Source of the DNA: Hyalangium minutum
GTDB taxonomy: Bacteria; Myxococcota; Myxococcia; Myxococcales; Myxococcaceae
DNA length: 64,000 nucleotides
Reading direction: 5' to 3'
Assembly: GCF_000737315.1 (NCBI RefSeq)
Contig: NZ_JMCB01000006.1
Span: forward strand, 868,001 to 932,000
Positions 12,840 to 30,708 of the stretch are shown here, in pieces. The notes under the pieces are model-generated. The model had not been told where the DNA came from, made no database searches, and was given only the letters and a program-made list of their open reading frames with translations. The translations under genes and the position numbers were made by a program. Every line of letters begins with the position of its first letter. Positions within the stretch are counted from its first letter, which is position 1.

Positions 12840-13049
12840 GGCTCGGCTCGCCTCGAAGCCCGTGAAGCGGCCAGGGGAGCCAGGGCTCTCCGTGCCGGGG
12901 CGTGTCCTGCCTGGCGGAGCGGCCGGGCCGCCACTTTTGTCGCCTGTTCCCTGCCGGAATGAGCAGCGTGGAGGTGGACGGGTGACACCGGGGAGCTGCG
13001 GGCCTCGAGTGTTCTCCAGGGAGAGCCCGAGGGCTCGGAGGTGGCCGCC

Positions 13050-14435
13050 ATGCCCATCGTCTGCATCACGAACCTGTCCCCGGATTCGGTGAGAGCAGCC
13101 AACACCGCGGCAGCCCTGGCTGCGCGGCGGAAGGTACCGCTGATGTTGTATGGCGTCCCGGAGCCTGAGAGCCCGAACGGAGCGGGCGCCTCGCAGGTGG
13201 TCCTGCATGGGCGGCTCGAGCTGGAGGCCGAGCGGCTCCGGGCCCAGGGCGTGGAGGTGCACACGGTGATGACGCCCAAGGCCGAGGAGGCGCTGCTGGG
13301 CGACGAGGAGTGCCGCAAGGCCGAGTGGTGCGTGGTGGCCGCCGATGGCTGGCAGATCCCCGTCTGGCGCCGCACCCCGCTGCCCGAGCGGCTGATGCAG
13401 CGTGCGTGTGCTCCGGTGCTCGTGGTGCGCCGCGACGAGGCGCTGGTGGACTGGGCCCATGGCCGGCGGCGGCTCGTGGCGATGGTGGGGGTGGACGCGT
13501 CGGATGAGGCGGATGGCTCGGTGGCCTTCATCCGGGCGCTGCGCGAGGTGGGGCCGTGCGACGTCATCGCCACGTATGTCTGCAGCCCGGCGGAGGAGCG
13601 CACGCGGCTGGGGATTCACAGCCCGGTGCGCGTGGAGTTGCTGGATCCGGTGGTGCGCGGCATCCAGGCGCTGGACCCCTACGTGGAGCGCGTGCTGGTG
13701 CGCGAGGTGCGCGAGCGCCTGGGAGAGGTGCCTGGGGAGGGGAACGTGGAGATCCACCTGGAGCCGGGCTACGGGCGGCGGGATGAGCACCTGCTGCACG
13801 TGGCGCGGAAGCGCGGGGTGGACCTGGTGGTGGTGGGGACACACCAGCGGGTGGGCCTGCAGCGGTGGTGGCATGGCTCGGTGTCCGCGGGGGTGATGCG
13901 GCACGCGGAGCAGTCCGTGGTGTGCGTGCCGGCCACGTTTGTGAAGCCTCGGAAGCTGGGAGCTCCCCGGAGCGTGCTGGTGCCGGTGGACTTCACCGAG
14001 GCGAGCCAGCGGGCCATTGCCCAGGCGCGCATGCTGGTGGGCGTGGGGGGGCGGGTGCACCTGCTCCACGTGCACGTGCGCCGGATGGGGGACCCGGACT
14101 GGACGGACCACTACGGGGTGCTGCCGGAGCCGCCGCGCGAGCGCGAGGAGATGATGCGCCGGCTCCAGGCGCTGGTGCCGCAGGAGAATGACGGGGTGCG
14201 TTGGACCCTCGAGGGGGTGAGTGCGAGCGAGGAGGCGCAGGCCATCTGCCAGGCGGCGGAGCGCGAGGGGGTGGATCTGGTGTGCGTGGGGGCAGTGGGG
14301 GGGAGGATGGGCCGGGTGGGCGGGGTGGCGCGGGAGCTGATGGCGCGCTGCCACCGGCCAGTGCTGGTAGTCCCGGCGCCGGAAGAGGCCAGAGAACCCT
14401 TGGGGTGGGGCGCTCAGGGCATCCACAACCCGTGA
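13050..14435 (+). CDS. Multi-domain universal stress protein
   Basis: Repeated USP motifs (VGVDAS, DLVVVGTH...GSVS, VLVPVDFTEAS, DLVCVG...PVLVV). Confidence 0.85.
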   Translation: MPIVCITNLSPDSVRAANTAAALAARRKVPLMLYGVPEPESPNGAGASQVVLHGRLELEAERLRAQGVEVHTVMTPKAEEALLGDEECRKAEWCVVAADGWQIPVWRRTPLPERLMQRACAPVLVVRRDEALVDWAHGRRRLVAMVGVDASDEADGSVAFIRALREVGPCDVIATYVCSPAEERTRLGIHSPVRVELLDPVVRGIQALDPYVERVLVREVRERLGEVPGEGNVEIHLEPGYGRRDEHLLHVARKRGVDLVVVGTHQRVGLQRWWHGSVSAGVMRHAEQSVVCVPATFVKPRKLGAPRSVLVPVDFTEASQRAIAQARMLVGVGGRVHLLHVHVRRMGDPDWTDHYGVLPEPPREREEMMRRLQALVPQENDGVRWTLEGVSASEEAQAICQAAEREGVDLVCVGAVGGRMGRVGGVARELMARCHRPVLVVPAPEEAREPLGWGAQGIHNP

Positions 14436-18455: not shown

Positions 18456-18872
18456 ATGGGCAAGGTCGTCAAGGGTATCGCCGACGTCGCGAAGAAGGTC
18501 TCCGAGGTCGCTGGGAAGGTCGCCAACATCGCCGGCAAGGTGATGGATGTCATCCAGAAGCCGCTGAGCGCGCTGACCCAGCCGATCAAGGACATCGCCG
18601 GGAAGTTCCTGGACAAGCTCGGCCCCTTCGGCAAGTTCCTGAAGCCGCTGGCTGACAAGGTCATCGACGGCGCCGCGAGCTTCCTCGGCGGCGGCCCGCT
18701 GGGCACCCTGGGCGCGCTGGGTGGCGTGGCCAAGACGGTGGGCGATGTGGCCAAGATCGCCGAGACCGTGAAGGGCGTGGCGGACAAGGTCGGCGCGTTC
18801 GCCGAGAACCCGCTGGGCCAGCTGAACTTCCAGAACATCCTGGCTCACGCCCACGCGCAGCACGTGGAGTAG
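18456..18872 (+). CDS. Small amphipathic-helix protein without signal peptide
   Basis: MGKVVKGIADVAKKVSEVAGKVANIAGKV periodicity; strong codon bias. Confidence 0.85.
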   Translation: MGKVVKGIADVAKKVSEVAGKVANIAGKVMDVIQKPLSALTQPIKDIAGKFLDKLGPFGKFLKPLADKVIDGAASFLGGGPLGTLGALGGVAKTVGDVAKIAETVKGVADKVGAFAENPLGQLNFQNILAHAHAQHVE

Positions 18873-18960
18873 TCGTCAGGAAGTTCGCGGCGCCTGCTGA
18901 GGCCGCATCAACGAGGGCCGGTCCCTTATGCGGGGACTGGCCCTTCGTCTTTTCCGGCAC

Positions 18961-19626
18961 TTAGCCGTTCTCGCGGGCCAACCGCGCCGCGTCACGCAGG
19001 AGCCGCTGGAAAGCCTCCTCGTCACGGCTCTCGTAGTAGCCGCGGATCTCCCCCATGCCGTCCACGAGCACGAAGTGGTCGCCGTGGAAGATGCCCATCA
19101 CGTCGGCCTCATCCAGGGACTGGCGGTCCATGTAGATCTTGAAGCTGTTGACGACGGTGTCCTTGATGGCGGCGTAGTCGCCGGTGAGGAAGCTCCAGCG
19201 AGCGGCGTTGGCGCCATGCTTCTGGGCGTACTCGGCCAGGCGCGCCGGGGTGTCATAGGCGGGGTCCACCGAGAAGGACACCAACTGCAGGCCGGGCCCG
19301 AACGCGTCCGTCTCCTTCTGGATGTGGGCCATCCTCCGGGTGAAGGCGGGGCAGACGGTGGGGCAGCGGGTGAAGATGAAATTGGCGACGTAGGGGTGGC
19401 CCTTGAGCTGGGCCGAGCCCCACGCGGAGCCGTCCTGCCGGGTGAAGGAGAACGCGGGCAGGGTGCCGAGCTGGGGCAGCGGCTGGGAGCGGGCGCGCAG
19501 GAAGCCTGCGGCGAGCACGGCCATCCCCAGCGCCATGACGGCCACTCCGAGCCAGAGCGCGGGGTGGCGGAGGAGCGGAATCGGGGCGGCGGGAGCGGGA
19601 GCGGAGGCAGGAGTCTCAGCGGACAT
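18961..19626 (-). CDS. SCO1/SenC family copper chaperone
   Basis: N-terminal TM, FIFTRCPTVCP (CxxxC), FHGDHFVLVD. Confidence 0.92.
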   Translation of the reverse strand: MSAETPASAPAPAAPIPLLRHPALWLGVAVMALGMAVLAAGFLRARSQPLPQLGTLPAFSFTRQDGSAWGSAQLKGHPYVANFIFTRCPTVCPAFTRRMAHIQKETDAFGPGLQLVSFSVDPAYDTPARLAEYAQKHGANAARWSFLTGDYAAIKDTVVNSFKIYMDRQSLDEADVMGIFHGDHFVLVDGMGEIRGYYESRDEEAFQRLLRDAARLARENG

Positions 19627-19966
19627 ATGAAGAAGGCCCTGGACGGAGGCAGCGGACAGCTAACGGAAGTACCACGGGAGCACAAGGGACGCGGTGACGC
19701 AGCGCGGTGCCCGAGGGTCCGAGAGCCTTGCCGGGAAGCGTGCACAGCGGGCGGGCATGCATTGCCTATATAAGGATGCGGGCCGAGCGTGCGGCGCTTG
19801 AGGGGCGTGGAGGGGCATGGTAGCCGGTGAGCCGATGCCCTGTGACCGCCCTGATCCGGTTGCCACGGCGGCCCTCTCGGAGTCCGGAGGGCCCCTGCGG
19901 CACGAGCCCTCTCTCCCGAGCATGTCCCTCCAGGCCTGGGCGCGGGCCCTGACGCGGTGCGTGCAG

Positions 19967-20173
19967 ATGCTGAGGACGGTGCTGGCGGCCGTGCTGGGCC
20001 TGCTGCCCGGGTGGGCGTGGGCGTGCCCAACGTGCGTGGCGAGGGCGCCGGAGTCGGCGGGGCGCTCGGCGCTGCTGGTGGGTGCGCTGCTGCTGGCGCC
20101 CTTCCTGCTGGTGGCGGTGGGCGTGTGGGCGGCGGTGCGGGTCGCGCGAGGTGATGCCAAGAGGAGCTCGTGA
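19967..20173 (+). CDS. Small exported/membrane protein with CPTC motif, first gene of the oxidase operon
   Basis: Signal-like ...AWACPTC followed by a TM helix; stop overlaps the subunit II ATG. Confidence 0.65.
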   Translation: MLRTVLAAVLGLLPGWAWACPTCVARAPESAGRSALLVGALLLAPFLLVAVGVWAAVRVARGDAKRSS

Positions 20174-20925
20174 TGGACGCCTCGCTGCTGGCGCCTCCGG
20201 AGAACGTGAGCGCGCACAGCCATCCCATCGATGCGTTGCTGGCGCTGAGCCACCGCTTCGATCTGATCCTGTCGGTGTTGATGCTGGGCGTGCTGGTGGG
20301 GTTCCTGTGGCACTTCCGAGGGGCTCGGAAGGTGGCGCCGGATGCGGGGACGATGCGGAGCCGGGCCTTCGTGATGGTGGCGGCGCTGACCATCTTCGGG
20401 GTGGTGGACGGGACGCTGTTCGCGCGCTCGCTGGGGTACCTGAACGACGTGCTGTGGAACTTCGAGGTGCCGGAGAAGAGCCCGGACACGGTGCGCGTGG
20501 AGGTGAACGCGCGGCAGTGGGCCTGGGAGGTGCGGTACGCGGGCGAGGATGGGCGCTTCAACACGGCGGATGACGTGCTGACGTGGAGCGAGCTGCGGGT
20601 GCCGGTGGGCGCGCCGGTGTGGGTGCAGCTGGCGTCCTCGGACGTGGTGCATGGGTTCTCGCTGCCGAACCTGCGGGTGAAGCTGGATGCGATCCCGGGC
20701 CGGGTGAACCAGACGTGGTTCCAGACGGCGCGCGAGGGCACGTGGGAAGTGGCCTGCTACCAGCACTGCGGCACGAGCCACTACAAGATGCGGGGCACGC
20801 TCACGGTCATGTCCCCGGAGGCGTACGCCACGTGGCTGCGCGAGGCGGGGAAGCAGGCGGGGCAGGCGTATGACGCGCAGGACACGGCCGCGCACTGGGG
20901 CTGGGAGTGGAGGCCCGCGCCATGA
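20170..20925 (+). CDS. coxB: Heme-copper oxidase subunit II (CuA)
   Basis: Two TMs; RQWAW; DVVHGF; CYQHCGTSHYKM CuA motif. Confidence 0.92.
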   Translation: MMDASLLAPPENVSAHSHPIDALLALSHRFDLILSVLMLGVLVGFLWHFRGARKVAPDAGTMRSRAFVMVAALTIFGVVDGTLFARSLGYLNDVLWNFEVPEKSPDTVRVEVNARQWAWEVRYAGEDGRFNTADDVLTWSELRVPVGAPVWVQLASSDVVHGFSLPNLRVKLDAIPGRVNQTWFQTAREGTWEVACYQHCGTSHYKMRGTLTVMSPEAYATWLREAGKQAGQAYDAQDTAAHWGWEWRPAP

Positions 20926-22676
20926 AGCTCTTCTCCACGGATCATAAGGTGGTGGCGCGGCAGTTCCTCTGGGCGGGGTTCGGGTTCCTGCTGGTGGGCG
21001 GGCTGCTGGCGATGCTCATCCGCTGGCAGTGGGCGTTCCCGGGGCGGGCGGTGCCGGGGCTCGGGTGGGCGCTGCCGAGCTCGGGCGGGGCGCTCACGCC
21101 GCCGGCGTACACGGGCGTCTTCACCATGCACGGGCTGCTGATGGTGTTCTTCGCCATCGCGCCGCTGTTGATTGGAGCGCTGGGTAACTTCGTCATTCCG
21201 CTGGCGGTGGGCGCTCGGGGCATGGCGTTCCCGCGGGTGTCGGCACTGAGCTTCTGGGTGTTCGCGGTGGGCGGGGTGCTGGTGCTGGCCTCGTTCGGGG
21301 TGCGGCTGGGGACGGCGAGCGCGGCGTGGACGAGCTACCCGCCGCTGTCCACGCACGTGTTCACGCCGGGCGTGGGGCAGACGCTGGTGATGGCGGGGGT
21401 GGTGTGCGCGGCGCTCTCGTCGTTTCTGGGCGCGGTGAACTACGTGGTGACGGTGGTGCGGTGCCGGGCGCCAGGGATGGAGTGGAAGCGGCTGCCGCTG
21501 ACGGTGTGGGGGCTGTTCTTCACGTCGGTGCTGAACCTGCTGTTCATCCCGGTGGTGGCGGCGGCCACGGGGATGCTGTTGATGGACCGGCTGGCGGGCA
21601 CGCGGTTCTTCCTCGAGGGCGCGGCGCTGACGCCGGGCACCGGGGGTGACCCGATGCTCTACCAGCACCTGTTCTGGCTGTTCGGGCACCCCGAGGTCTA
21701 CATCCTCATCCTGCCGGGCTGGGGGATGATCGGAGACATGGTGGCCTTCTTCAGCCGGAGGCCGGCGCACGGGTACCGGGGTACGGTGCTGGCGATGGGC
21801 GTCATCTCCTCGCTGTCCGGGCTGGTGTACGCGCACCACCTCTTCACGAGCGGGCTGTCGCCGATGCTGGGGCGGGCGTTCAGCACGCTGACGATGATCA
21901 TCTCGCTGCCGTCCACGGTGCTGTTCCTGAACTGGCTGGCGACGCTGTTCCGCGGGAGCGTGCGGCTGACGGCGCCGCTGCTGGCAGCGGTGAGCGCCAT
22001 GGTGGTGTTCGGGCTGGGAGGGATTACGGGGCTGGCGCTGGGGACGGTGGCCACGGACATTCCGCTGCACGGGACGATGTGGGTGGTGGGGCACTTCCAC
22101 CTGACGATGGGGGCGGCGAGCTTCCTGGCGGTGTTCGCGGGGCTGTACTTCTGGTTCCCGAAGATGTTCGGGCGGACGCTGCACGCGGGGCTGTCGAGGG
22201 CGCACGTGCTGCTGAGCGCGGTGCTGTTCCTGGCGGTGTTCGGCGGGCAGCTGATGACGGGGTACGCGGGGCAGCTGCGGCGGTTGTATGACCCGTACCA
22301 GTACACGTTCCTGAAGCACCTGCTGGAGCTGAACCAGTGGACGAGCTTCGCGGCGTTCGCGCTGGGGCTGACGCAGCTGCTGTTCGTGGTGAACCTGGTG
22401 TGGACGCTGCGCAAGGGGCCGGCGGCGGATGCGAACCCGTGGCAGGTGGGGACGCTCGAGTGGACGTGCGCGCCGAGCCCGCCGCCGGTGGACAACTACC
22501 CGCAGGTGCCGGTGGTGGTGCGCGGGCCGTATGCGCTCTCGCAGCCGGAGGTGATGGATCGGCTGGGGCGCGATTGGATTGGCCAGGCGGAGGTGCTGCC
22601 GGGAGAGGCGGCGCCCGCGGCGGAGGGTGAAGCCGCGCAGCCGGGACCGGTGCAGAGCGTGGGAGGGACGGCATGA
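20922..22676 (+). CDS. coxA: Heme-copper oxidase subunit I, A-type-like but with altered proton-channel residues
   Basis: TMHG, WLFGHPEVY, AHHLF, GHFH, LRR; ATGA overlap with subunit II. Confidence 0.93.
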   Translation: MKLFSTDHKVVARQFLWAGFGFLLVGGLLAMLIRWQWAFPGRAVPGLGWALPSSGGALTPPAYTGVFTMHGLLMVFFAIAPLLIGALGNFVIPLAVGARGMAFPRVSALSFWVFAVGGVLVLASFGVRLGTASAAWTSYPPLSTHVFTPGVGQTLVMAGVVCAALSSFLGAVNYVVTVVRCRAPGMEWKRLPLTVWGLFFTSVLNLLFIPVVAAATGMLLMDRLAGTRFFLEGAALTPGTGGDPMLYQHLFWLFGHPEVYILILPGWGMIGDMVAFFSRRPAHGYRGTVLAMGVISSLSGLVYAHHLFTSGLSPMLGRAFSTLTMIISLPSTVLFLNWLATLFRGSVRLTAPLLAAVSAMVVFGLGGITGLALGTVATDIPLHGTMWVVGHFHLTMGAASFLAVFAGLYFWFPKMFGRTLHAGLSRAHVLLSAVLFLAVFGGQLMTGYAGQLRRLYDPYQYTFLKHLLELNQWTSFAAFALGLTQLLFVVNLVWTLRKGPAADANPWQVGTLEWTCAPSPPPVDNYPQVPVVVRGPYALSQPEVMDRLGRDWIGQAEVLPGEAAPAAEGEAAQPGPVQSVGGTA

Positions 22677-23233
22677 CGCCCGTGGAGACGCCTGCTCCCG
22701 CGGGGCGAACAGACGCGGGGACGGACTGGTTCGGAGCCGTGGTGGCGCTGAGCGCGTGGGGGATGCTCTTCGCGGCGCTGGCGTTCTCGGTGGGCTACCT
22801 GCGGATGCGGGACCCGTGGCCGCTGGCGGGGATGCCGCCGCTGCCGAGGATTCTCCCGGCAGTGTCGGTGGGGCTGCTCGGGGTGGCGGCAGCGCTGCTG
22901 CACCTGAGCGGGCGCGGGGCGAAGGCGCTGCCGTGGGCCGGGGGTGCGCTGGGAGCCTTGGTGGCCTCGCTTGCGGTGCAGGGGCTCGTGATGAGCACGC
23001 TGTGGAGTGCGGGGCTGAAGCTGCCGCAGGGTGGGGCGTACGCGTCCGTGGTGTACGGACTGGGCGCGGTGCACGGTGCGCACGTGGTGGCGGGAGGGGT
23101 GGGCCTGGTGCGCGAGCTGGTGCGAGGGCTGCGAGGCGTGGAGGTGCGCGGAGCGCTGCGGCTCTGGGCGCTCTATGGAGCTTTCCTGACGGTGACGGGG
23201 CTGATCCTCTTCGCGGCGGTGTACCTGCCATGA
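22673..23233 (+). CDS. Short heme-copper oxidase subunit III-like protein
   Basis: About five TMs; LFAALAFS and YGL.AVHGAHV motifs; overlapping start. Confidence 0.75.
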   Translation: MTPVETPAPAGRTDAGTDWFGAVVALSAWGMLFAALAFSVGYLRMRDPWPLAGMPPLPRILPAVSVGLLGVAAALLHLSGRGAKALPWAGGALGALVASLAVQGLVMSTLWSAGLKLPQGGAYASVVYGLGAVHGAHVVAGGVGLVRELVRGLRGVEVRGALRLWALYGAFLTVTGLILFAAVYLP

Positions 23234-24219
23234 GCGCGAGACGCACGGGGCTGGGGTGGTTGCCGGTGCTGGTGGCGCTCGGGGTGGGGTGCAGCGCGGG
23301 GGCACCGGCGCCGAAGCTCGAGCCGCTGAAGCTGGGCGACGGGCGCACGGTGGCGGCGGAGACGCTGGAGCGCGGGCGGGACGTGTACGCGTACTACTGC
23401 CTGTCCTGCCACGGCTCGGGAGGGGATGGGCAGGGGCCGGCGGCGGTGGGGATGCGTCCACCGCCTCGGAACTTCAAGCAGGGGCTGTTCAAGTTTGGCG
23501 GAGTGGCGGCGGGTGAGCTGCCCACGGACGAGGCGCTGAAGCGCACGGTGCGGCGAGGGCTGCACGGCACGCCGATGCTGCCGTGGGGTGTGCCGGAGGC
23601 GGACGTGGAGGCGGTGGTGCAGTACGTGAAGACGTTCAGCCCGCGCTGGCAGCAGGAGGCGCCGGGGCAGCCGCTGGAGGCGTCGGCGGATCCGTGGAAG
23701 GGGCGCGAGGCGGAGGCGGTGGAGCGGGGCAAGCGGGCCTACCACGTGGCGGGGAAGGGGAACGCGGGGTGCTCGGGGTGCCACATCTCGTACTTGCCGA
23801 AGCCGGAGCTGGAGGTGCTGGTGGAGCAGGTGACGGGGCGCAAGGTGGACCTGAGCAAGGTGGATCCGTACACGCAGCAGGCGCGGGACTCGGACTACAC
23901 GGTGGCGGTGGACGACAAGGGCGAGCCCGCGCAGATGGCGAGGGTGTTGCCGCCAGACTTCCTGATGCACCGGCTGCGGACGGTGTGGCCGCTGGGGACG
24001 GAGGTGGAGGGAGCGGAGTACACGCCGGAGCGGCAGCGCGAGGACCTGTACCGGGTGATTGCGGCGGGCGTGGGCGGGGCGGCGATGCCGACGTGGAAGG
24101 GCGCCATTCCCGAGGAGAACCTGTGGGCGCTCGCGTACTACGTGCAGACGCTGGTGAACCAGCGAGACACGGCCGAGGGCCGCGCGTTCAAAGCGCGCCT
24201 GCGCAACCCGGCGAAGTGA
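23230..24219 (+). CDS. Diheme cytochrome c lipoprotein
   Basis: Lipobox LGVGC; CLSCH and CSGCH; PPPRNF, GTPMLPW and AAMPTW. Confidence 0.88.
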   Translation: MSARRTGLGWLPVLVALGVGCSAGAPAPKLEPLKLGDGRTVAAETLERGRDVYAYYCLSCHGSGGDGQGPAAVGMRPPPRNFKQGLFKFGGVAAGELPTDEALKRTVRRGLHGTPMLPWGVPEADVEAVVQYVKTFSPRWQQEAPGQPLEASADPWKGREAEAVERGKRAYHVAGKGNAGCSGCHISYLPKPELEVLVEQVTGRKVDLSKVDPYTQQARDSDYTVAVDDKGEPAQMARVLPPDFLMHRLRTVWPLGTEVEGAEYTPERQREDLYRVIAAGVGGAAMPTWKGAIPEENLWALAYYVQTLVNQRDTAEGRAFKARLRNPAK

Positions 24220-24324
24220 CGCTTTCCATATTGAGCGAGCGTGACCAGCCTACCTGATAGGTTGGTTCCTCGTCTAGAGTCCGAGGCCATGACGTGTCAG
24301 ACCCCTCAGGTAGGGTGCTGGTCC

Positions 24325-25215
24325 ATGGCTTCCATGCAGCACGAAGGACTCCTGCTCTTGTTCCGCAACCGGCCCACGTTGGCGCCGGAGCTGTTGCGTG
24401 ATGCGCTCGGTCTGAAGTTGCCGGCCTGGACGGAGGCGCGGGTGGAGTCCGCGGAGCTCACCGAGGTGGTCCCCACCGAGTACCGAGCAGACCTCGTGGT
24501 GCTTCTGCTGGAGGGCAAGCCCATCTTCGCCATTGTGGTGGAGGTGCAGCTGTCGCGGGACGAGGACAAGCGGAAGACGTGGCCGCTGTACCTGACGAGC
24601 CTGCGCTCACGAGTGGGCTGTCCCACCGCATTGCTGGTGGTCGCTCCGGATGCCTCGGTGGCGCGATGGTGCGCACAGCCCATCGAGCTGGGGCACCCAG
24701 GCTTCACACTGCATCCGCTGGTGGCAGGGCCAGGCGCCATCCCTGTCGTTACCAACGAGCAGGAGGCCTGTCAGGACCCAGAGTTGGCGGTGCTGTCGGC
24801 AATGGCCCATGGGCGTGAAGAGGTGGGCATGGCCGTCGCCCAGACGGTTATGAACGCCTTGGGGGACCTTGATACGGAACGTGTCCGCCTTTACGTTGAC
24901 CTGGCCATGTCCTCGCTGAGCGAGGCGGCCCGTGGTGCCTTGGAGGCTCTGATGCAGAGTGGCAAGTACGAGTACCAGAGCGAGTTCGCGCGAAAGTACG
25001 TGGCACAGGGGCGTGAAGAGGGGCTCCGGGAGGGGCTTCAGCAGGGCCGGTATGAGGGCGAGCGGGCAGCACTGCTCGAAGTGCTCAATGCCCGGGGCCT
25101 CCAGGTGGATGAGACCACTCTTCATCGAATCATGGGCTGCTCAGACCTCGCGCAGCTCAAGAGCTGGCTGCGCAAGGCTGCGACGGCACAATCCACCCAA
25201 GAGCTCTTCGCGTGA
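24325..25215 (+). CDS. Rpn-like PD-(D/E)xK nuclease (putative transposase family)
   Basis: YRADLVV...IVVEVQ motif; C-terminal GREEGLREGLQQGRYEGE repeats; less GC3-biased than neighbours. Confidence 0.8.
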   Translation: MASMQHEGLLLLFRNRPTLAPELLRDALGLKLPAWTEARVESAELTEVVPTEYRADLVVLLLEGKPIFAIVVEVQLSRDEDKRKTWPLYLTSLRSRVGCPTALLVVAPDASVARWCAQPIELGHPGFTLHPLVAGPGAIPVVTNEQEACQDPELAVLSAMAHGREEVGMAVAQTVMNALGDLDTERVRLYVDLAMSSLSEAARGALEALMQSGKYEYQSEFARKYVAQGREEGLREGLQQGRYEGERAALLEVLNARGLQVDETTLHRIMGCSDLAQLKSWLRKAATAQSTQELFA

Positions 25216-25450: not shown

Positions 25451-28400
25451 ATGGTCCTCCCGCTCCACACCCCAGCATTCCAGCAGGCAGGCTCTGGGAC
25501 ACCCGTGGGCGGCGACCCGAAGTTCGATCCCCTCCTGGACAGCATCACCGATGGCATCGTCTCGGTGGACCGGGAGTGGCGCGTCACCTACCTCAATGCC
25601 GTGACCGAGCGGCTCGCAGGCCGCTCGCGTGAGTCCCTGCTGGGCAAGGTGCTCTGGGCCGAGCTCCCCGACCTGACCCAGACGCCCTTCGCCGCGGCCA
25701 TCCGCCAGTCCATGGAGACCGGCAGCCAGGCCACCCTCACGGACTATTTCCCACCCACGGACTCGTGGTTCGAGATCCGCGTCTTCCCCTCAGCCGCGGG
25801 ACTTGTGCTCATCCTCCGCGACATCACCGAGATGCGTCAGGCCGAGGTGGAACGCCTCCGGCTGCTGGCCGCCGAGCGCTCCGCCCGCGAGCAGGCCGAG
25901 CGCACCGCTGACCGGATCACGCGCCTCCAGGAGCTCACCGCCCACCTCTCCGCGGCCCGCTCCCCCGAAGAGGTGATGTCCGTGGCCGTGGATCGCATCA
26001 TGGCCTCGGTGGGCGCCAACCTGGCCATGGTGGCCCTGCCCGTCGAGGGCCAGGATGTCCTTCGAACGGTGGCCTACAACGGCCACTCACGCCAGGTGTC
26101 CCACGACTTCCAGCTCATGCCGCTGGATGCGCCCCTGCCCGTCTCCGCCACCTACCGCTCCGGCCAGCCCGAGTGGCTCGAGTCTTCCGAAGCCCTGGTG
26201 TCTCGCTACCCGAACCTCCACCCACTGCTCCGGGAGCAGTCCCTGACCCGCTCGCTGGCGAGCATGCCCATGGTGGTCGAGAGCCGGGTGGTCGGCGTGC
26301 TGGCGCTGTGCTTCCCCGAGCCGCGTGCCTTCTCGGGTGATGACCGCGAGTTCCTCCTGGTGCTGGCGCGGCACTGCGCGCTGGCCATCGAGCGCTCGCG
26401 GCTGCTGGCCGAGGTGGAGGCCCAGCGCGCCCGGCTCGAGGAACTGGTGATGCGCGCCCCCGCGGTGATGTCCGTCACCCGGGGCCCCGAGCACCGCTTC
26501 GTCCTCTGCAATCCGCGCTACCGCCACCTGCTGGGCGGACGTGACGTGACGGGGCTGACCGCGCGCCAGGCCATCCCGGGCCCCGAGGGCCAGAACGTCC
26601 TCGATATCCTGAACCGCGTCTTCGCCACCGGAGAGCCCTTCGTCGGCAAGGAGCTCCCCGGGCGCCTCGGAGCGTCCACCGCGGATGTGACGATGTCCGA
26701 GAGCTACTTCGACTTCGTCTACCAGCCGCTGCGCGACGCCGAGGGGCGCGTGGAGGGCATTGCCTCGTTCGCCTTCGAGGTGACGGATCAGGTGCTCGCG
26801 CGGCAGACCGTGGAGGAGCTGCTGCGGGACATGGCGCGCAGCGAGGAGCGCTTCCGCGCCTTCCTCACCGCCACCTCGGAGATCATCTGGGACATGCCGC
26901 CCCAGGGCGAGTTCGATGCGGATCAGCCGGGCTGGCGCACGTTCACCGGCCAGACGCGGGCACAGTTGCTGGGCTGGGGCTGGCTGGACGCAGTGCACCC
27001 GGAGGACCGCGAGTACGCGGCGCGAGAGTGGCGCCGGGCGGTGGCCGCGAGCACGCCCTACCAGGGCGAAGTGCGGCTGCGGCGCCATGACGGGGTGTAC
27101 CGGTACATGCAGGTGCGCGCGGTGCCGGTGCTGGAGCTGAACGGAGCGGTGCGCGAGTGGGTGGGCATCCACCGCGACATCACCCGCCAGCGCGAGGACG
27201 AGGCCGAGCGCGCGCGGCTCCTCATGCGCGAGCAGTACCACCGGGCGCAGCTCCAGGGGCTGGCGCAGGCCTCGCTGGCCATTGGGCGGGCGCCCTCGCT
27301 GGATCAGGCGCTGCGCGTCATCACCGAGCAGGCGCGGGAGCTCATCGGCGCGCACCAGGCCGTGACGAGCCTCTCCACGGGCGAGGACTGGGCGCAGGCC
27401 ATCCACACCGTCTCGCTGTCGGCCAAGTACGCCGCGTGGCGTGACTACGCGGCGCCGGTGGACGGCTCGGGCATCTACGCGAAGGTGTGCGAGAGCAACC
27501 AGCCGGCGCGGATGACGCAGGCGGAGCTGGAGGCTCACCCGAGGTGGCACGGCTTCGGGGCGCACAAGGGCAAGCACCCGCCCATGCGGGGCTGGCTCGC
27601 GGTGCCGATGGTGGACCGCAATGGGCGCAACCTCGGGTTGATCCAGCTGTCGGACCGGTACGAGGGCGACTTCACCGCCGAGGACGAGGCCATCCTGGTG
27701 CAGCTGGCCCGGCTGGCGGCGGTGGCCATCGAGAACGCGCGGCTCATGGCGGAGTCCCAGGCGGCCAACCGCGCCAAGGACGAGTTCCTCGCGGTCATGA
27801 GCCACGAGCTGCGCACGCCCCTCACGGCGGTGCTGGGCTGGACGCAGATGCTGCGCAACCAGAAGGACAACGCCGTCATCCGCGAGAAGGGCCTGGAAGT
27901 CATCGAGCGCAACGCGCGCTCGCTGGCGCAGCTCATCGAGGACGTGCTGGACGTGTCGCGCATCCTCACGGGGAAGCTGGCGCTGCACCGCAAGGCGGTG
28001 GACCTGGCCACAGTGGTGCAGGCCGCGGTGGAGGTGGTGCGGCCTCGCGCCGAGCAGAAGAGCGTGTCGCTGGCGGTGTCCGTGGGCCCAGGGACGGGGC
28101 ACGTGACGGGGGACCCGGGACGGCTGCAGCAGGTGTTCTGGAACCTGCTGGCCAACGCGGTGAAGTTCACGCAAGAGGGCGGCACGGTGGAGGTGCAGCT
28201 GGAGCGGGCCGAGGCGGAGTGGCGGGTGCGGGTGAAGGACACGGGCCAGGGCATCCACGCGGACGCGCTGCCGCACCTGTTCGAGCGCTTCTGGCAGGCG
28301 GACGGCAGCAGCACGCGCGAGCACGGCGGGCTGGGGCTGGGGCTCGCCATCGTCCGGCACCTGGTGGAGCTGCACGGCGGAACGGTGGAGGCGGAGAGCG

Positions 28401-28891
28401 CGGGGCTGGGGCTGGGCGCCACCTTCACGGTCCGGCTGCCGCTGCCCGTGGTGCTGCCGGAGGCCGAGCGCTCGGCCTCGGGCGAGGGCGCCGCGAAGAG
28501 CCCTGCGCGGCTGGACGGCGTCCGGGTGCTGCTGGTGGAGGACGCGGAGGACGCGCGCGAGCTCATTACCCTGCTGCTGCGCGATCGCGGCGCGGAGGTG
28601 CGCACGGCCGCCAACGGCCGCGACGCCATGGAGCGGCTCACCGAGGCGCTGCCGGACGTGCTCATCTCCGACATCGGCCTGCCCGGCGAGGACGGCCACG
28701 CGGTGCTCAAGCGCGTGCGCGACTGGGCGGACACGAAGGGCGAGTGGATCCCCGCGATTGCACTCACAGCGTACGCCGGGGCGGAGGACGCCCGCCGGGC
28801 CTACCGGGCCGGCTTCCAGGTGCACATGGCCAAGCCGCTGGAGGCCGAGGCCCTGGTCGAGGCCGTGGCGAAGCTGTCCGGTCAGGAATGA
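25451..28891 (+). CDS. Hybrid sensor histidine kinase PAS-GAF-PAS-PAS-GAF-HisKA-HATPase-REC
   Basis: FLAVMSHELRTPL, NLLANAVKFT, DTGQGI, GGLGLGL, ISDIGLPG. Confidence 0.95.
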   Translation: MVLPLHTPAFQQAGSGTPVGGDPKFDPLLDSITDGIVSVDREWRVTYLNAVTERLAGRSRESLLGKVLWAELPDLTQTPFAAAIRQSMETGSQATLTDYFPPTDSWFEIRVFPSAAGLVLILRDITEMRQAEVERLRLLAAERSAREQAERTADRITRLQELTAHLSAARSPEEVMSVAVDRIMASVGANLAMVALPVEGQDVLRTVAYNGHSRQVSHDFQLMPLDAPLPVSATYRSGQPEWLESSEALVSRYPNLHPLLREQSLTRSLASMPMVVESRVVGVLALCFPEPRAFSGDDREFLLVLARHCALAIERSRLLAEVEAQRARLEELVMRAPAVMSVTRGPEHRFVLCNPRYRHLLGGRDVTGLTARQAIPGPEGQNVLDILNRVFATGEPFVGKELPGRLGASTADVTMSESYFDFVYQPLRDAEGRVEGIASFAFEVTDQVLARQTVEELLRDMARSEERFRAFLTATSEIIWDMPPQGEFDADQPGWRTFTGQTRAQLLGWGWLDAVHPEDREYAAREWRRAVAASTPYQGEVRLRRHDGVYRYMQVRAVPVLELNGAVREWVGIHRDITRQREDEAERARLLMREQYHRAQLQGLAQASLAIGRAPSLDQALRVITEQARELIGAHQAVTSLSTGEDWAQAIHTVSLSAKYAAWRDYAAPVDGSGIYAKVCESNQPARMTQAELEAHPRWHGFGAHKGKHPPMRGWLAVPMVDRNGRNLGLIQLSDRYEGDFTAEDEAILVQLARLAAVAIENARLMAESQAANRAKDEFLAVMSHELRTPLTAVLGWTQMLRNQKDNAVIREKGLEVIERNARSLAQLIEDVLDVSRILTGKLALHRKAVDLATVVQAAVEVVRPRAEQKSVSLAVSVGPGTGHVTGDPGRLQQVFWNLLANAVKFTQEGGTVEVQLERAEAEWRVRVKDTGQGIHADALPHLFERFWQADGSSTREHGGLGLGLAIVRHLVELHGGTVEAESAGLGLGATFTVRLPLPVVLPEAERSASGEGAAKSPARLDGVRVLLVEDAEDARELITLLLRDRGAEVRTAANGRDAMERLTEALPDVLISDIGLPGEDGHAVLKRVRDWADTKGEWIPAIALTAYAGAEDARRAYRAGFQVHMAKPLEAEALVEAVAKLSGQE

Positions 28892-29013
28892 CCCATTGCG
28901 TCATGTAGCGGGGAGGACCTGCCCGGCTGATCGGAGGGGGAGGCGCAACTTCTCCCAGGCTCGTGCGAGAATCAGACGAAGATTTACCCCTTTGTCTCCC
29001 GCGGAGTCCTCCC

Positions 29014-30708
29014 GTGACCGTCTATTCTGTTCGCAGCGGCGACACCCTCAACGCCCTGGCGAAGCGCTTCAACACCTCGGTGTCTGAGATCGCCAAGGCC
29101 AACAACATCACCAACCCCAACAAGATCTCCACCGGGCAGAAGCTGACCATCCCGGACGGGTTCGATCGGCCCACGACCAAGCCGACGCAGTCCGGCGGTA
29201 GCAGCAGCGGCGGCGGCTCGAGCGCCCCGGCCCAGGCCGCGGGCAACGGCGGCCCGGTGCGTGACAGCAACGGCCGTCAGTACCAGACGTCCTCGGACGG
29301 CACGCCGATGTACAAGCAGGGCGATGCGGAGTGGGGCAGCCGCGCTCTGGGCACCGGCTCCAGCATCAGCGCCGCCGGCTGCGCCATGACGGCCACCTCC
29401 ATGGCCGTGAGCAAGATCAGCGGCCAGGCCATCAACCCGGGCCAGATGGACAAGTACCTGGACTCGCACGGTGGCTACGTCGGCAACGGCCTCGTGTGGG
29501 ACAAGGCGGCTCAGGCGGCCGGTCTGCACGCCTCCAAGCAGGGCTGGAGCCTCGACACCATCAACAAGCAGGTGGACGCGGGCCGTCCCGTCGTCATCGG
29601 CGTGGACTACAAGGCCGGCAGCGGCGGCGGCGCCAACGGCACCGACCACTGGATCACCGTGACGGGCCGGGGCAAGGAGGGTGGCAAGGACGTCTACTTC
29701 GCCAACGATCCGGCCACCGGGAAGCAGATCACCCTGCGCAACGAGGGCGGCCGCCTGGTGGGTGGCCCCTCGAACTACAAGTCCACGGGCGAGCTGGTGA
29801 CGTTCTCCGGCGGCAACCCCCCGAAGCCGGGCACCACGCCGTCCACCCCGGCCACGCCGTCCACCCCGAGCACCGGCGGCACCACCGGCACGGGTGGCAC
29901 CCAGGCTCCGGCGGCGAACGCCACGAGCCTCAAGGGCGTGACGATTCCCTCGGCCAACCTGAAGCGCGGCGACACGGGCCCGCAGGTGGAGCAGCTCCAG
30001 CAGGCGCTGGTGAAGGCCGGCTACATGACGTCGGCCCAGGTGAACACGGGCCCGGGCACCTTCGGCCCGAAGACCGAGGCCGCCGTGAAGAAGTTCCAGG
30101 CGGACCACGGCGTGGAGTCCATCGGCCAGTACGGCCCGAAGACCCGCGCGGCCTTCGAGAAGCTGGGCGCCAAGGTGGGCGGCTCCACCCCGAGCACCCC
30201 TACCACTCCCACCACTCCGACGGGTCCGATTGGCGACCTGCCCAAGACGGGCAACGCCTTCATCGACCGCGTGGCGGCCGACGCCATCAAGAGCCAGCGG
30301 CAGACGGGCGTGCCCGCCTCCGTGACGCTCGCGCAGGCGATGCTGGAGAGCGGCAGCGGCAAGTCCGGCCTGGCCACCAAGGGCAACAACTTCTTCGGCA
30401 TCAAGGGTGAGGGCCCCGCCGGCCACGTCACCATGCCGACGAAGGAGTTCCTCAACGGCAAGTGGGTGACGGTGGACGCCAACTTCCGCAAGTACAACTC
30501 GCCCGCCGAGTCCTTCGCGGATCACGGCAAGTTCCTGCGTGACAACAAGCGCTACGCCAACGCGTTCAAGCACACGGACGACGCGGCCCAGTTCGCCAAG
30601 GAGATCCACAAGGCCGGCTACGCCACCGACCCGGAGTACTCCAACAAGCTCATCTCCATCATCAACAAGTACGGCCTGGAGCGCTTCGACCAGATCGGCC
30701 GTCAGTAA
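29014..30708 (+). CDS. Multi-domain peptidoglycan hydrolase: LysM, C39-like peptidase, PG-binding, GH73 glucosaminidase
   Basis: YSVRSGDTL LysM; YKQ...AGCAM...DHWI...NDP; LKRGDTGPQVEQLQ; AQAMLESG, NNFFGIK, GYATDPEY. Confidence 0.9.
   Translation: MTVYSVRSGDTLNALAKRFNTSVSEIAKANNITNPNKISTGQKLTIPDGFDRPTTKPTQSGGSSSGGGSSAPAQAAGNGGPVRDSNGRQYQTSSDGTPMYKQGDAEWGSRALGTGSSISAAGCAMTATSMAVSKISGQAINPGQMDKYLDSHGGYVGNGLVWDKAAQAAGLHASKQGWSLDTINKQVDAGRPVVIGVDYKAGSGGGANGTDHWITVTGRGKEGGKDVYFANDPATGKQITLRNEGGRLVGGPSNYKSTGELVTFSGGNPPKPGTTPSTPATPSTPSTGGTTGTGGTQAPAANATSLKGVTIPSANLKRGDTGPQVEQLQQALVKAGYMTSAQVNTGPGTFGPKTEAAVKKFQADHGVESIGQYGPKTRAAFEKLGAKVGGSTPSTPTTPTTPTGPIGDLPKTGNAFIDRVAADAIKSQRQTGVPASVTLAQAMLESGSGKSGLATKGNNFFGIKGEGPAGHVTMPTKEFLNGKWVTVDANFRKYNSPAESFADHGKFLRDNKRYANAFKHTDDAAQFAKEIHKAGYATDPEYSNKLISIINKYGLERFDQIGRQ

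Follow-up and report, generated by a model that had tools for sequence, protein, structure and literature searches.

The D-channel aspartate and the K-channel lysine are textbook requirements of A-type cytochrome oxidases, and the debate on proton gating in these enzymes leans heavily on crippled point mutants at the two sites. Published classifications ascribe both channels to A-type enzymes (PMC3084760; PMC11214002). Here we describe a cytochrome oxidase operon in a 64,000-nucleotide stretch of the Hyalangium minutum genome (positions 868,001 to 932,000 of contig NZ_JMCB01000006.1, referred to below as the window), whose gene for subunit I (20922..22676, + strand) encodes Gly and Leu at these two positions. 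The original prediction, made from the letters of the window alone, saw in this gene a member of a heme-copper oxidase (HCO) subfamily without either residue, with a different proton route, no pumping, or another substrate or role. The subfamily proved to be real, conserved and unbroken, but the two losses are not joint: as judged from alignments and trees, they are separate events of very different age, the loss of the K channel being ancient and clade-defining and that of the D-channel entrance being recent and limited to one nested branch. In the full-text literature (including PMC6431628, PMC3707914, and PMC11841059), we came across no account of an A-type clade lacking K or D, subscription papers and theses being outside our reach.

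Among the described systems, the A1-type aa3 oxidases (Rhodobacter sphaeroides CtaD, Paracoccus denitrificans CtaDII, and bovine COX1) share with the window enzyme the fold of 12 transmembrane (TM) helices, the six metal-binding His residues, the GHPEVY motif, the Arg pair, a CuA-containing subunit II, a COX3-type subunit III, an SCO gene, and the upper D channel. The sequence identity is 35-36%, and the AlphaFold2 model of the window subunit I compared by Foldseek has TM-scores of 0.8-0.9 to the three proteins. In contrast to them, the whole family of the window enzyme lacks K319 (bovine numbering, which we use for alignment positions; K362 in R. sphaeroides) and the entry Glu of subunit II, its own branch lacks D91/D132, N98/N139, and the Asp ligand of Mg, and the operon includes genes for a small CxxC protein and a separate diheme cytochrome c. 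The ba3 oxidase of Thermus thermophilus resembles the window enzyme in having a single proton pathway, no K-analogue Lys, no D-channel Asp, CuA, and few subunits. However, ba3 has no helix VI Glu and uses a K-analogue of Tyr, Ser, and Thr residues, whereas the window enzyme has this Glu (Glu258), Trp267 and Gly271 at +7 and +11 from the cross-linking Tyr, and Leu at the Lys position, and the pathway that it retains is of the D type rather than the K type. The nitric oxide reductases (NORs) cNOR and qNOR are HCO members without conserved N-side channels; cNOR is non-electrogenic, its protons coming from the periplasm (PMC11214002). The NORs differ by the absence of the cross-linked Tyr and the presence of FeB and an added Glu, and cNOR has no CuA, whereas in the window enzyme the Tyr, CuA, and the ligands of CuB are all in place.

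At the two channels, the window enzyme is reminiscent of the R. sphaeroides and P. denitrificans mutants (K362M, D132A/N, N139D/T, and D132N/N139D; the channel-mutant structures include PDB 3om3, 3omi, and 3ehb), with a hydrophobic residue, Gly, and Ser at the equivalents of positions 362, 132, and 139, and the solved K362M and D132A mutants are among its top structural matches in Foldseek. The engineered enzymes are crippled or uncoupled by single changes in an otherwise canonical protein, whereas the changes in the window enzyme have become fixed, are shared by several genera, and occur together with many signature substitutions. Finally, the CoxMNOP ccaa3 enzymes of Bradyrhizobium and Pseudomonas are comparable as auxiliary A-type oxidases with two COX3-like genes and c-type hemes. 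In CoxMNOP, subunit II carries both c hemes as a fusion and the genes run M-N-O-P (PMC5492768), whereas the subunit II in the window is a plain CuA protein and the diheme cytochrome c is encoded by a separate last gene. We rejected an identity with CoxMNOP on operon architecture (PMC5492768), the CoxN sequence being outside the comparison.

The subunit I gene overlaps the stop codon of the preceding subunit II gene by ATGA and encodes a protein of 584 aa with an A-type fold and 12 TM helices; its AlphaFold2 model (pTM 0.87) consists of twelve long helices. It matches the Pfam COX1 family (PF00115) along the full length (E 3.6e-118). The best solved relatives in HMMER comparisons are A-type chains from mycobacteria, Paracoccus, Rhodobacter, and mitochondria (E 1e-95 to 1e-87), and all top matches in PDB are of the A type, the match to the B-type ba3 oxidase being remote (E 1.7e-5, 26.8 bits). 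Because the score against the NCBIfam equivalog of canonical subunits I (TIGR02891, CtaD_CoxA) is 516 bits, under the curated cut-off of 670.75, the sequence is A-like yet atypical. The COX1 fold and the six His for the low-spin heme, the high-spin heme, and CuB place the protein in the HCO superfamily. The cross-linking Tyr, which at the sequence level separates the O2-reducing members from NORs, is present in 121 of 121 homologs, and the helix VI Glu of the A1 subtype (bovine E242) is invariant across the family. All CuA ligands and the electron-entry Trp were found in subunit II. In its sequence, the gene thus has the hallmarks that show it to encode the catalytic subunit of a cytochrome c-dependent, CuA-containing heme-copper O2 reductase. 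The nearest sequences belong to Hyalangium species (86-92% identity), and there is no second COX1 gene in the 64-kb window. Many members of the family (P0009, P0019, P0023, P0025, P0060, and others) are filed publicly as 'cbb3-type cytochrome c oxidase subunit I', which for A-type proteins with a CuA subunit II is a systematic misannotation, and the database name of the Stigmatella ortholog is 'Alternative cytochrome c oxidase'.

Residue equivalences were obtained from HMMER pairwise alignments to solved A-type subunits I and from MAFFT alignments with 120 to 327 homologs, and the two methods agree; the bovine reference was PDB 1occ_A, identical to COX1 at 514 of 514 residues. The alignments bear out the prediction that the metal-binding His residues (H70, H256, H305, H306, H391, and H393, corresponding to bovine H61, H240, H290, H291, H376, and H378), E242, Y244, and the Arg pair R438/R439 are kept. 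The retained HPEVY motif (21687..21701, + strand) comprises the CuB ligand His256, Glu258 (E242), and the cross-linking Tyr260 (Y244), and it is invariant in 121 close homologs. The predicted substitutions were likewise found, all on the + strand: Gly100 (codon GGC, 21219..21221) stands for the D-channel entrance Asp (bovine D91, R. sphaeroides D132), Ser107 (21240..21242) for the D-channel Asn98 (R. sphaeroides N139), Leu334 (codon CTG, 21921..21923) for the K-channel Lys (bovine K319, R. sphaeroides K362), and Gly384 (22071..22073) for the Mg/Mn ligand Asp369. The predicted changes of N99 to A108 and of S255 to G271 are also present and carry little weight, these positions being variable even among canonical enzymes. 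Further replacements are Ser331 for Thr316, Asp272 for bovine H256, and Trp267 for F251, and the D-channel residues N80 and N163 are retained. In subunit II, Ser64 (codon 20359-61) takes the place of the K-channel entry Glu (E62), and Gln198 (codon 20761-63) that of the Mg ligand E198, so that of the Mg/Mn site H383 of subunit I (bovine H368) is retained and both acidic ligands are replaced.

Misalignment at the two sites could be ruled out by the concordance of HMMER and MAFFT, the lack of nearby gaps, and the verified 1occ_A reference. The possibility that a proper alignment would restore Asp and Lys, raised with the original prediction, did not materialize: the HMMER alignments are gap-free at both the D site ('plavgarGmafpr' in the window and 'plqigapDvafpr' in the reference) and the K site ('islpstvLflnwl' and 'iavptgiKffnwi'). 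An alignment check found no acidic residue in the II-III loop, no basic residue in helix VIII, and no Asp, Glu, or Lys close by in either that might act as a substitute.

We then determined how far the two losses extend. In the set of the 120 closest homologs and the window, position 319 is Leu or Met in 121 of 121 sequences and bovine H256 is Asp in 121 of 121, and D91, N98, and D369 are retained in 94. A survey of loci with one genome per species returned 80 loci, 79 of them from the family and one (L080) an outgroup; the taxa include Myxococcota, Bdellovibrionota (Bacteriovoracaceae), Planctomycetota, Acidobacteriota (Thermoanaerobaculia), Elusimicrobiota, and Omnitrophota. Lys319 is replaced by Leu, Phe, Met, Val, or Ile in 79 of 79 family loci, and the substitution noticed in the window is therefore conserved in orthologs, with no Lys among either the family loci or the 121 close homologs. 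The K-channel Glu of subunit II is not conserved across the 79 loci either, a Glu being found there in one of them (L066). Both the Lys and the subunit II Glu are kept only by the outgroup L080, the most distant locus (Methylomirabilota, 46% identity). The D channel is complete in all surveyed loci beyond the branch of the window, with an acidic residue at position 91 and N80, N163, S101, and E242 throughout; the only surveyed D-keeping locus without N98 is L030, which has Glu at position 91 and Ser at position 98.

In a neighbor-joining (NJ) tree, the K-less family forms a single clade in 197 of 200 bootstrap replicates, the family set in this count including partial loci and 50%-identity cluster representatives. 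The clade, with this strong support, covers Myxococcota, Bdellovibrionota, Planctomycetota, and Acidobacteriota, and it nests among canonical A1- and A2-type representatives that contain both K and D (NJ was the only tree method, and B, C, and NOR references were left out). About 20 signature substitutions distinguish the family from canonical enzymes, including F251W, V320F, A313S, H256D, L195N, W288Y, and V380T. The distribution of its key residues shows the K proton pathway to be eliminated throughout a multi-phylum clade inside the A family.

The mid-channel K positions are hydrophobic or variable in the family (255 is G/S/A/I, 316 is A/S/T/G, 317 is E/V/A/T/M, and 319 is L/F/M), and the conserved elements of this region are W251, F320, and the hydrophobic residue (L/F/M) at 319. 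To judge by its residues, the region looks like an abandoned pathway and not like a re-engineered one. E317/E306 was considered as a family-wide substitute for the Lys and rejected, Glu being present in many Myxococcota and missing in Bacteriovoracaceae and others. The same residues bear on the proposal that protons still pass through the old K region along a Lys-free path like the hydroxyl-lined K-analogue of the B family. K-type paths without Lys do work in the B and C families, and several residues could line such a path here, namely Asp272 (bovine 256), His283 (268), Ser331/Thr332, Ser328 (313), Thr (309), and Tyr260; D256 and S313 are invariant in the family, T309 is found in 119 of 121 sequences, and H268 in 31 of 31 members of the branch of the window, the canonical enzymes having Phe there in 62 of 63 cases. 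Nevertheless, the variability or hydrophobicity of positions 255, 316, 317, and 319, the filling of the region by Trp251 and Phe320, and the absence of the subunit II entry Glu from an unconserved position make this path improbable.

The D-channel entrance has a much narrower pattern of loss. We refer to the Hyalangium/Stigmatella/Pyxidicoccus/Myxococcus/Corallococcus subclade as G2 and to the D-keeping remainder of the family as G1. G2 is nested in the K-less clade with an NJ bootstrap of 200/200, and sits within a wider D-less branch (152/200) that includes Kofleriaceae metagenomic lineages and a Myxococcaceae metagenome-assembled genome (MAG). Position 91 is Gly, Arg, Ser, or Gln in 31 of 31 sequences of G2 and Asp in 165 of 166 of G1, and position 98 is Ser or Thr in 31 of 31 and Asn in 165 of 166, respectively. 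The lower D channel of G2 is relaxed (H/N/T/S at position 80 and S/G/A at position 101), in contrast to the upper channel, where N163, S156, S115, and E242 are each found in 31 of 31 sequences and S157 is also retained. About 40 signature substitutions mark the branch, among them F268H (31/31), N406H (29/31), V366P, A303R, and P437L. The change of D369 to Gly or Ala is confined to G2, the rest of the family having Asp, while E198Q in subunit II is family-wide; by this distribution, the loss of the Mg site is specific to the G2 branch.

The mouth of the channel has also changed in G2. An acidic residue at position 502 or 503 is present in 24 of 31 G2 sequences and in 5 of 166 G1 sequences, His at 503 in none of the 31 and in 125 of the 166, and Asp at the position of bovine N11 in 31 of 31. 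In the bovine structure, N11 and H503 presumably lie at the D-channel mouth, adjoining D91. In the window, Asp524 (22491..22493, + strand) is at the bovine His503 position, and is by the alignment counts a candidate for a relocated carboxylate at this mouth.

Our tentative reading, to which we give a chance somewhat short of even, is that of a working cytochrome c:O2 oxidoreductase without a K pathway, in which all protons travel by the upper D channel from a remodeled mouth, probably with little or no pumping. Since the Tyr, the CuB ligands, and the Glu are invariant, the enzyme would still reduce O2; the invariance of the Tyr, the CuB His, and E242 argues against a changed substrate, as far as residues can tell. 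Protons would enter by a mouth made of Asp7 (bovine N11), His8, Ser107, and Asp524 (in place of the 502/503 His pair), and all of them would be passed on to Glu258 and the binuclear center by the upper D pathway, which is retained. The conservation of this upper part likewise argues for a remodeled D route over a complete loss of the N-side proton supply. With the Asn gate changed to Ser and the K pathway absent, coupling would probably be reduced or lost, and the enzyme would serve as an auxiliary, low-efficiency oxidase (for O2 scavenging or as an electron sink) rather than as the main energy-conserving one. We expect pumping to be low or absent, and the role to be auxiliary, because of the behavior of known mutants: in R. 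sphaeroides, N139 substitutions uncouple pumping with turnover kept, K362M blocks the reduction of the binuclear center, and the D132N/N139D double mutant, in which the entrance carboxylate is relocated, regains function.

Several observations weigh against this reading. K362M and D132A/N each almost abolish turnover in the model A-type enzymes, and a working enzyme would therefore need compensation. The acidic residue at 502 or 503 is missing in 7 of 31 G2 sequences, for instance in Corallococcus, where there is a deletion, and it cannot be a universal solution. E242 is also lost in close relatives, being Gln in P0122 (the Myxococcaceae MAG) and P0139 and Ala in P0174, which on the residues compared shows a trend to abandoning the D pathway entirely. 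The operon of Stigmatella aurantiaca DW4/3-1 is reduced to the small CxxC protein and subunits II and I beside SCO. The ratio of nonsynonymous to synonymous substitution rates (dN/dS) of subunit I is high for COX1, G2 is 10-27% further from the outgroups than G1, and this combination of elevated dN/dS and divergence fits some relaxation of constraint. As separate observations, P0122, P0139, and P0174 keep all His ligands and the Tyr while the three canonical key residues of the proton pathways are all gone, and in the Stigmatella locus (L082, CP002271, 8155-11707) no COX3 or cytochrome c gene follows subunit I, the next open reading frame (ORF) being unrelated. The Stigmatella operon would represent a minimal form of the enzyme, with two subunits, in an organism that is tractable.

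Taken to the extreme, relaxation would mean a decaying, non-functional paralog, for which we see hardly any room. The dN/dS values of 0.3-0.45, the divergence of G2, the degenerate subunit III and lost accessory genes described below, and the Stigmatella operon that is down to subunits II and I would all fit decay. On the other side stand more than 30 intact orthologs from at least five genera (71-92% identity), none of which has a frameshift or a ligand loss, and the invariance of all metal ligands, Y244, E242, and R438/R439. Pairwise Nei-Gojobori dN/dS for the whole subunit I gene is 0.22-0.56 among six G2 members, and for its core 0.31 and 0.43 in comparison with the Hyalangium MAGs L001 and L004; for calibration, the neighboring genes, with 0.17-0.87, have similar or higher ratios, and no protein of the locus is better conserved than subunit I. 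These ratios are a rough measure, since the low proportion of synonymous differences (0.13-0.15), presumably due to the bias in codon usage and in GC content at third codon positions of this GC-rich genome, inflates them. Together, they indicate at the codon level a G2 lineage that changed faster and is still under purifying selection. The decay of a single copy is thus rejected by ortholog conservation and dN/dS, and the outcome under which the original prediction would have failed, with orthologs keeping D and K around a decaying copy, is not what we found (K in 0 of 79 loci, and D91 absent in 31 of 31 G2 sequences).

The remaining genes of the operon were compared across the family. A gene for an SCO1/SenC copper chaperone (18961..19626, - strand; Pfam SCO1-SenC, E 1.5e-28) is divergent from the operon and adjoins it in most related loci. 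Directly before subunit II is the gene for a small protein of about 67 aa with a signal or TM segment and an ACPTC motif (19970..20173, + strand; the ORF opens at 19817 and the start is uncertain), whose stop overlaps the start of subunit II. This protein has no match in Pfam. A homolog (48% identity, ACPQC) is in the same place in D-intact relatives (e.g., L083:8774-8989), and the protein is present in all D-less loci and also at L001:5058-5249, with the motif A-C-P-x-C conserved; it may act in assembly, specifically in this family, handle copper or thiols, or be an additional subunit. Subunit II (20170..20925, + strand) matches Pfam COX2 (E 1.3e-16), scores 136.8 against NCBIfam CoxB, below the cut-off of 147.7, and has a complete CuA site (H161, C196, C200, H204, and M207) with the electron-entry residue W117. 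Subunit III (22673..23233, + strand; 186 aa, about 5 TM helices) is short and strongly diverged. It has no WHFVD motif and no match to Pfam COX3, in contrast to 22 of 27 orthologs (best E 6e-30), and aligns with orthologs that have the COX3 motifs; a tblastn comparison to the COX3 of L083 gave 37% identity (E 2e-24). The last gene encodes a diheme cytochrome c (23230..24219, + strand; CLSCH and CSGCH; Pfam Cytochrome_CBB3 in two stretches, E 1.8e-17) with an N-terminal signal or lipoprotein-like anchor. Its position is conserved across the family, and it is presumed to be the electron donor to CuA.

A typical D-intact operon comprises SCO, COX3 (about 224 aa), COX4_pro, the CxxC protein, COX2, COX1, a further COX3 (about 200 aa), and the diheme cytochrome c. 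Among 75 D-keeping loci, 55 have at least two COX3-like genes and 52 have COX4 within the flanks, whereas 6 of 6 D-less loci have one COX3 and no COX4. The original view of an otherwise intact operon therefore holds for SCO and CuA, but not for subunit III, which has lost its COX3 match, nor for the second COX3 and COX4, which are missing. Subunit III supports proton uptake by the D channel, and for this reason the loss of COX3 alongside D91 is coherent.

In order to see whether the window reflects a wider pattern, we counted Lys319 and Asp/Glu91 in 118 full-length 50%-cluster representatives with all ligands, these counts not being phylogenetically independent. Both residues are present in 71, only the acidic residue in 31, neither in 15, and only the Lys in 1; with 15 representatives against 1, D loss is thus found almost only on K-less backgrounds. 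In the NJ tree it recurs in several lineages that stand apart from one another, K-to-Q and K-to-I/V groups among them. A broader claim, that A-type-derived O2 reductases repeatedly gave up both N-side pathways, first K and then D, to form a 'channel-less' class that keeps the Tyr-CuB-heme core and the Glu and draws protons from a new entrance or from the periplasm, is one that we consider doubtful. If it were true, the 'channel-less' oxidases would be non-pumping and perhaps non-electrogenic O2 scavengers, an O2-reducing counterpart of cNOR and a mirror image of the K-only B and C families. Among the sequences P0121-P0270, separate NJ lineages contain fused proteins of about 840 aa with K-to-Q and N163-to-E replacements, and another K-less group combines K-to-I/V/L with H368-to-R and D369-to-G.

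These data also bear on the main rival in our ranking, under which the window enzyme scavenges O2 with weak or no electrogenicity, protons reaching Glu258 and the binuclear center from the periplasmic side by the former exit or water path. Models for such uptake are cNOR and the D132A mutants with 'reverse respiratory control'. The absence of D91, N98, and K319 from subunit I and of E62 from subunit II, the loss of COX3 and COX4, the loss of E242 in sister lineages, and the recurrent D loss on K-less backgrounds would all be in line with periplasmic uptake, as would the remodeling of the P-side Mg and water-exit region in G2 (D369G/A, V366P, and P437L, on top of the family-wide E198Q in subunit II). 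However, the invariance of N163, S156, and S115 in G2 would be needless if protons came from the P side, the loss of the Mg site is uncoupled from D loss in other D-less lineages, and no new conserved acidic or polar chain was identified on the P side. We therefore consider periplasmic uptake unlikely, the other rivals being less likely still.

The vicinity of the operon includes a protein with three Usp domains upstream (13041-14435, + strand) and a hybrid kinase with PAS, GAF, HisKA, HATPase, and receiver domains downstream (25451-28891, + strand); either of these might tie the operon to the sensing of stress, redox state, or O2. Such neighbors, an unusual proton-channel pattern, and the repeated switches of the HCO scaffold to NO reduction (PMC11214002) might suggest that the enzyme is no longer an O2 reductase, after a shift to a different chemistry (the reduction of NO or peroxide, for example) or to a role such as signaling. 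This shift is very unlikely in view of the invariant cross-link Tyr, three CuB His, and E242, the Tyr being absent from all recognized NOR families (PMC11214002). Moreover, oxidases typically come with CuA, SCO, and a cytochrome c donor, and no denitrification genes were seen among the scanned neighboring genes. Between the cytochrome c gene and the kinase lies an ORF of 324 aa (24241-25215, + strand) without a Pfam match. The syntenic Hyalangium loci L001 and L004 have nothing equivalent, and the ORF looks like a lineage-specific insertion. Farther downstream, a cell-wall hydrolase with LysM, peptidase C39-like, PG_binding_1, and Glucosaminidase domains (28963-30708, + strand) fits a predatory myxobacterium. 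A scan for sigma-70 promoters in 18800-24600 found nothing, and a sigma-54-like GG/GC element near 19750 was dropped for its wrong spacing.

The family would add a category to HCO schemes in which every A-type enzyme is taken to have both K and D, and the scoring of 'aerobic respiration' genes in metagenomes would be affected, its members being annotated at present as plain subunit I or wrongly as 'cbb3-type'. The K-less, D-intact clade offers a natural test of whether one D-type pathway serves both the reductive and the oxidative half-cycles. The nested clade without the D-channel mouth would similarly test the limits of entrance remodeling and whether pumping is dispensable. In this way, the family could reveal which elements of the pump are truly obligatory.

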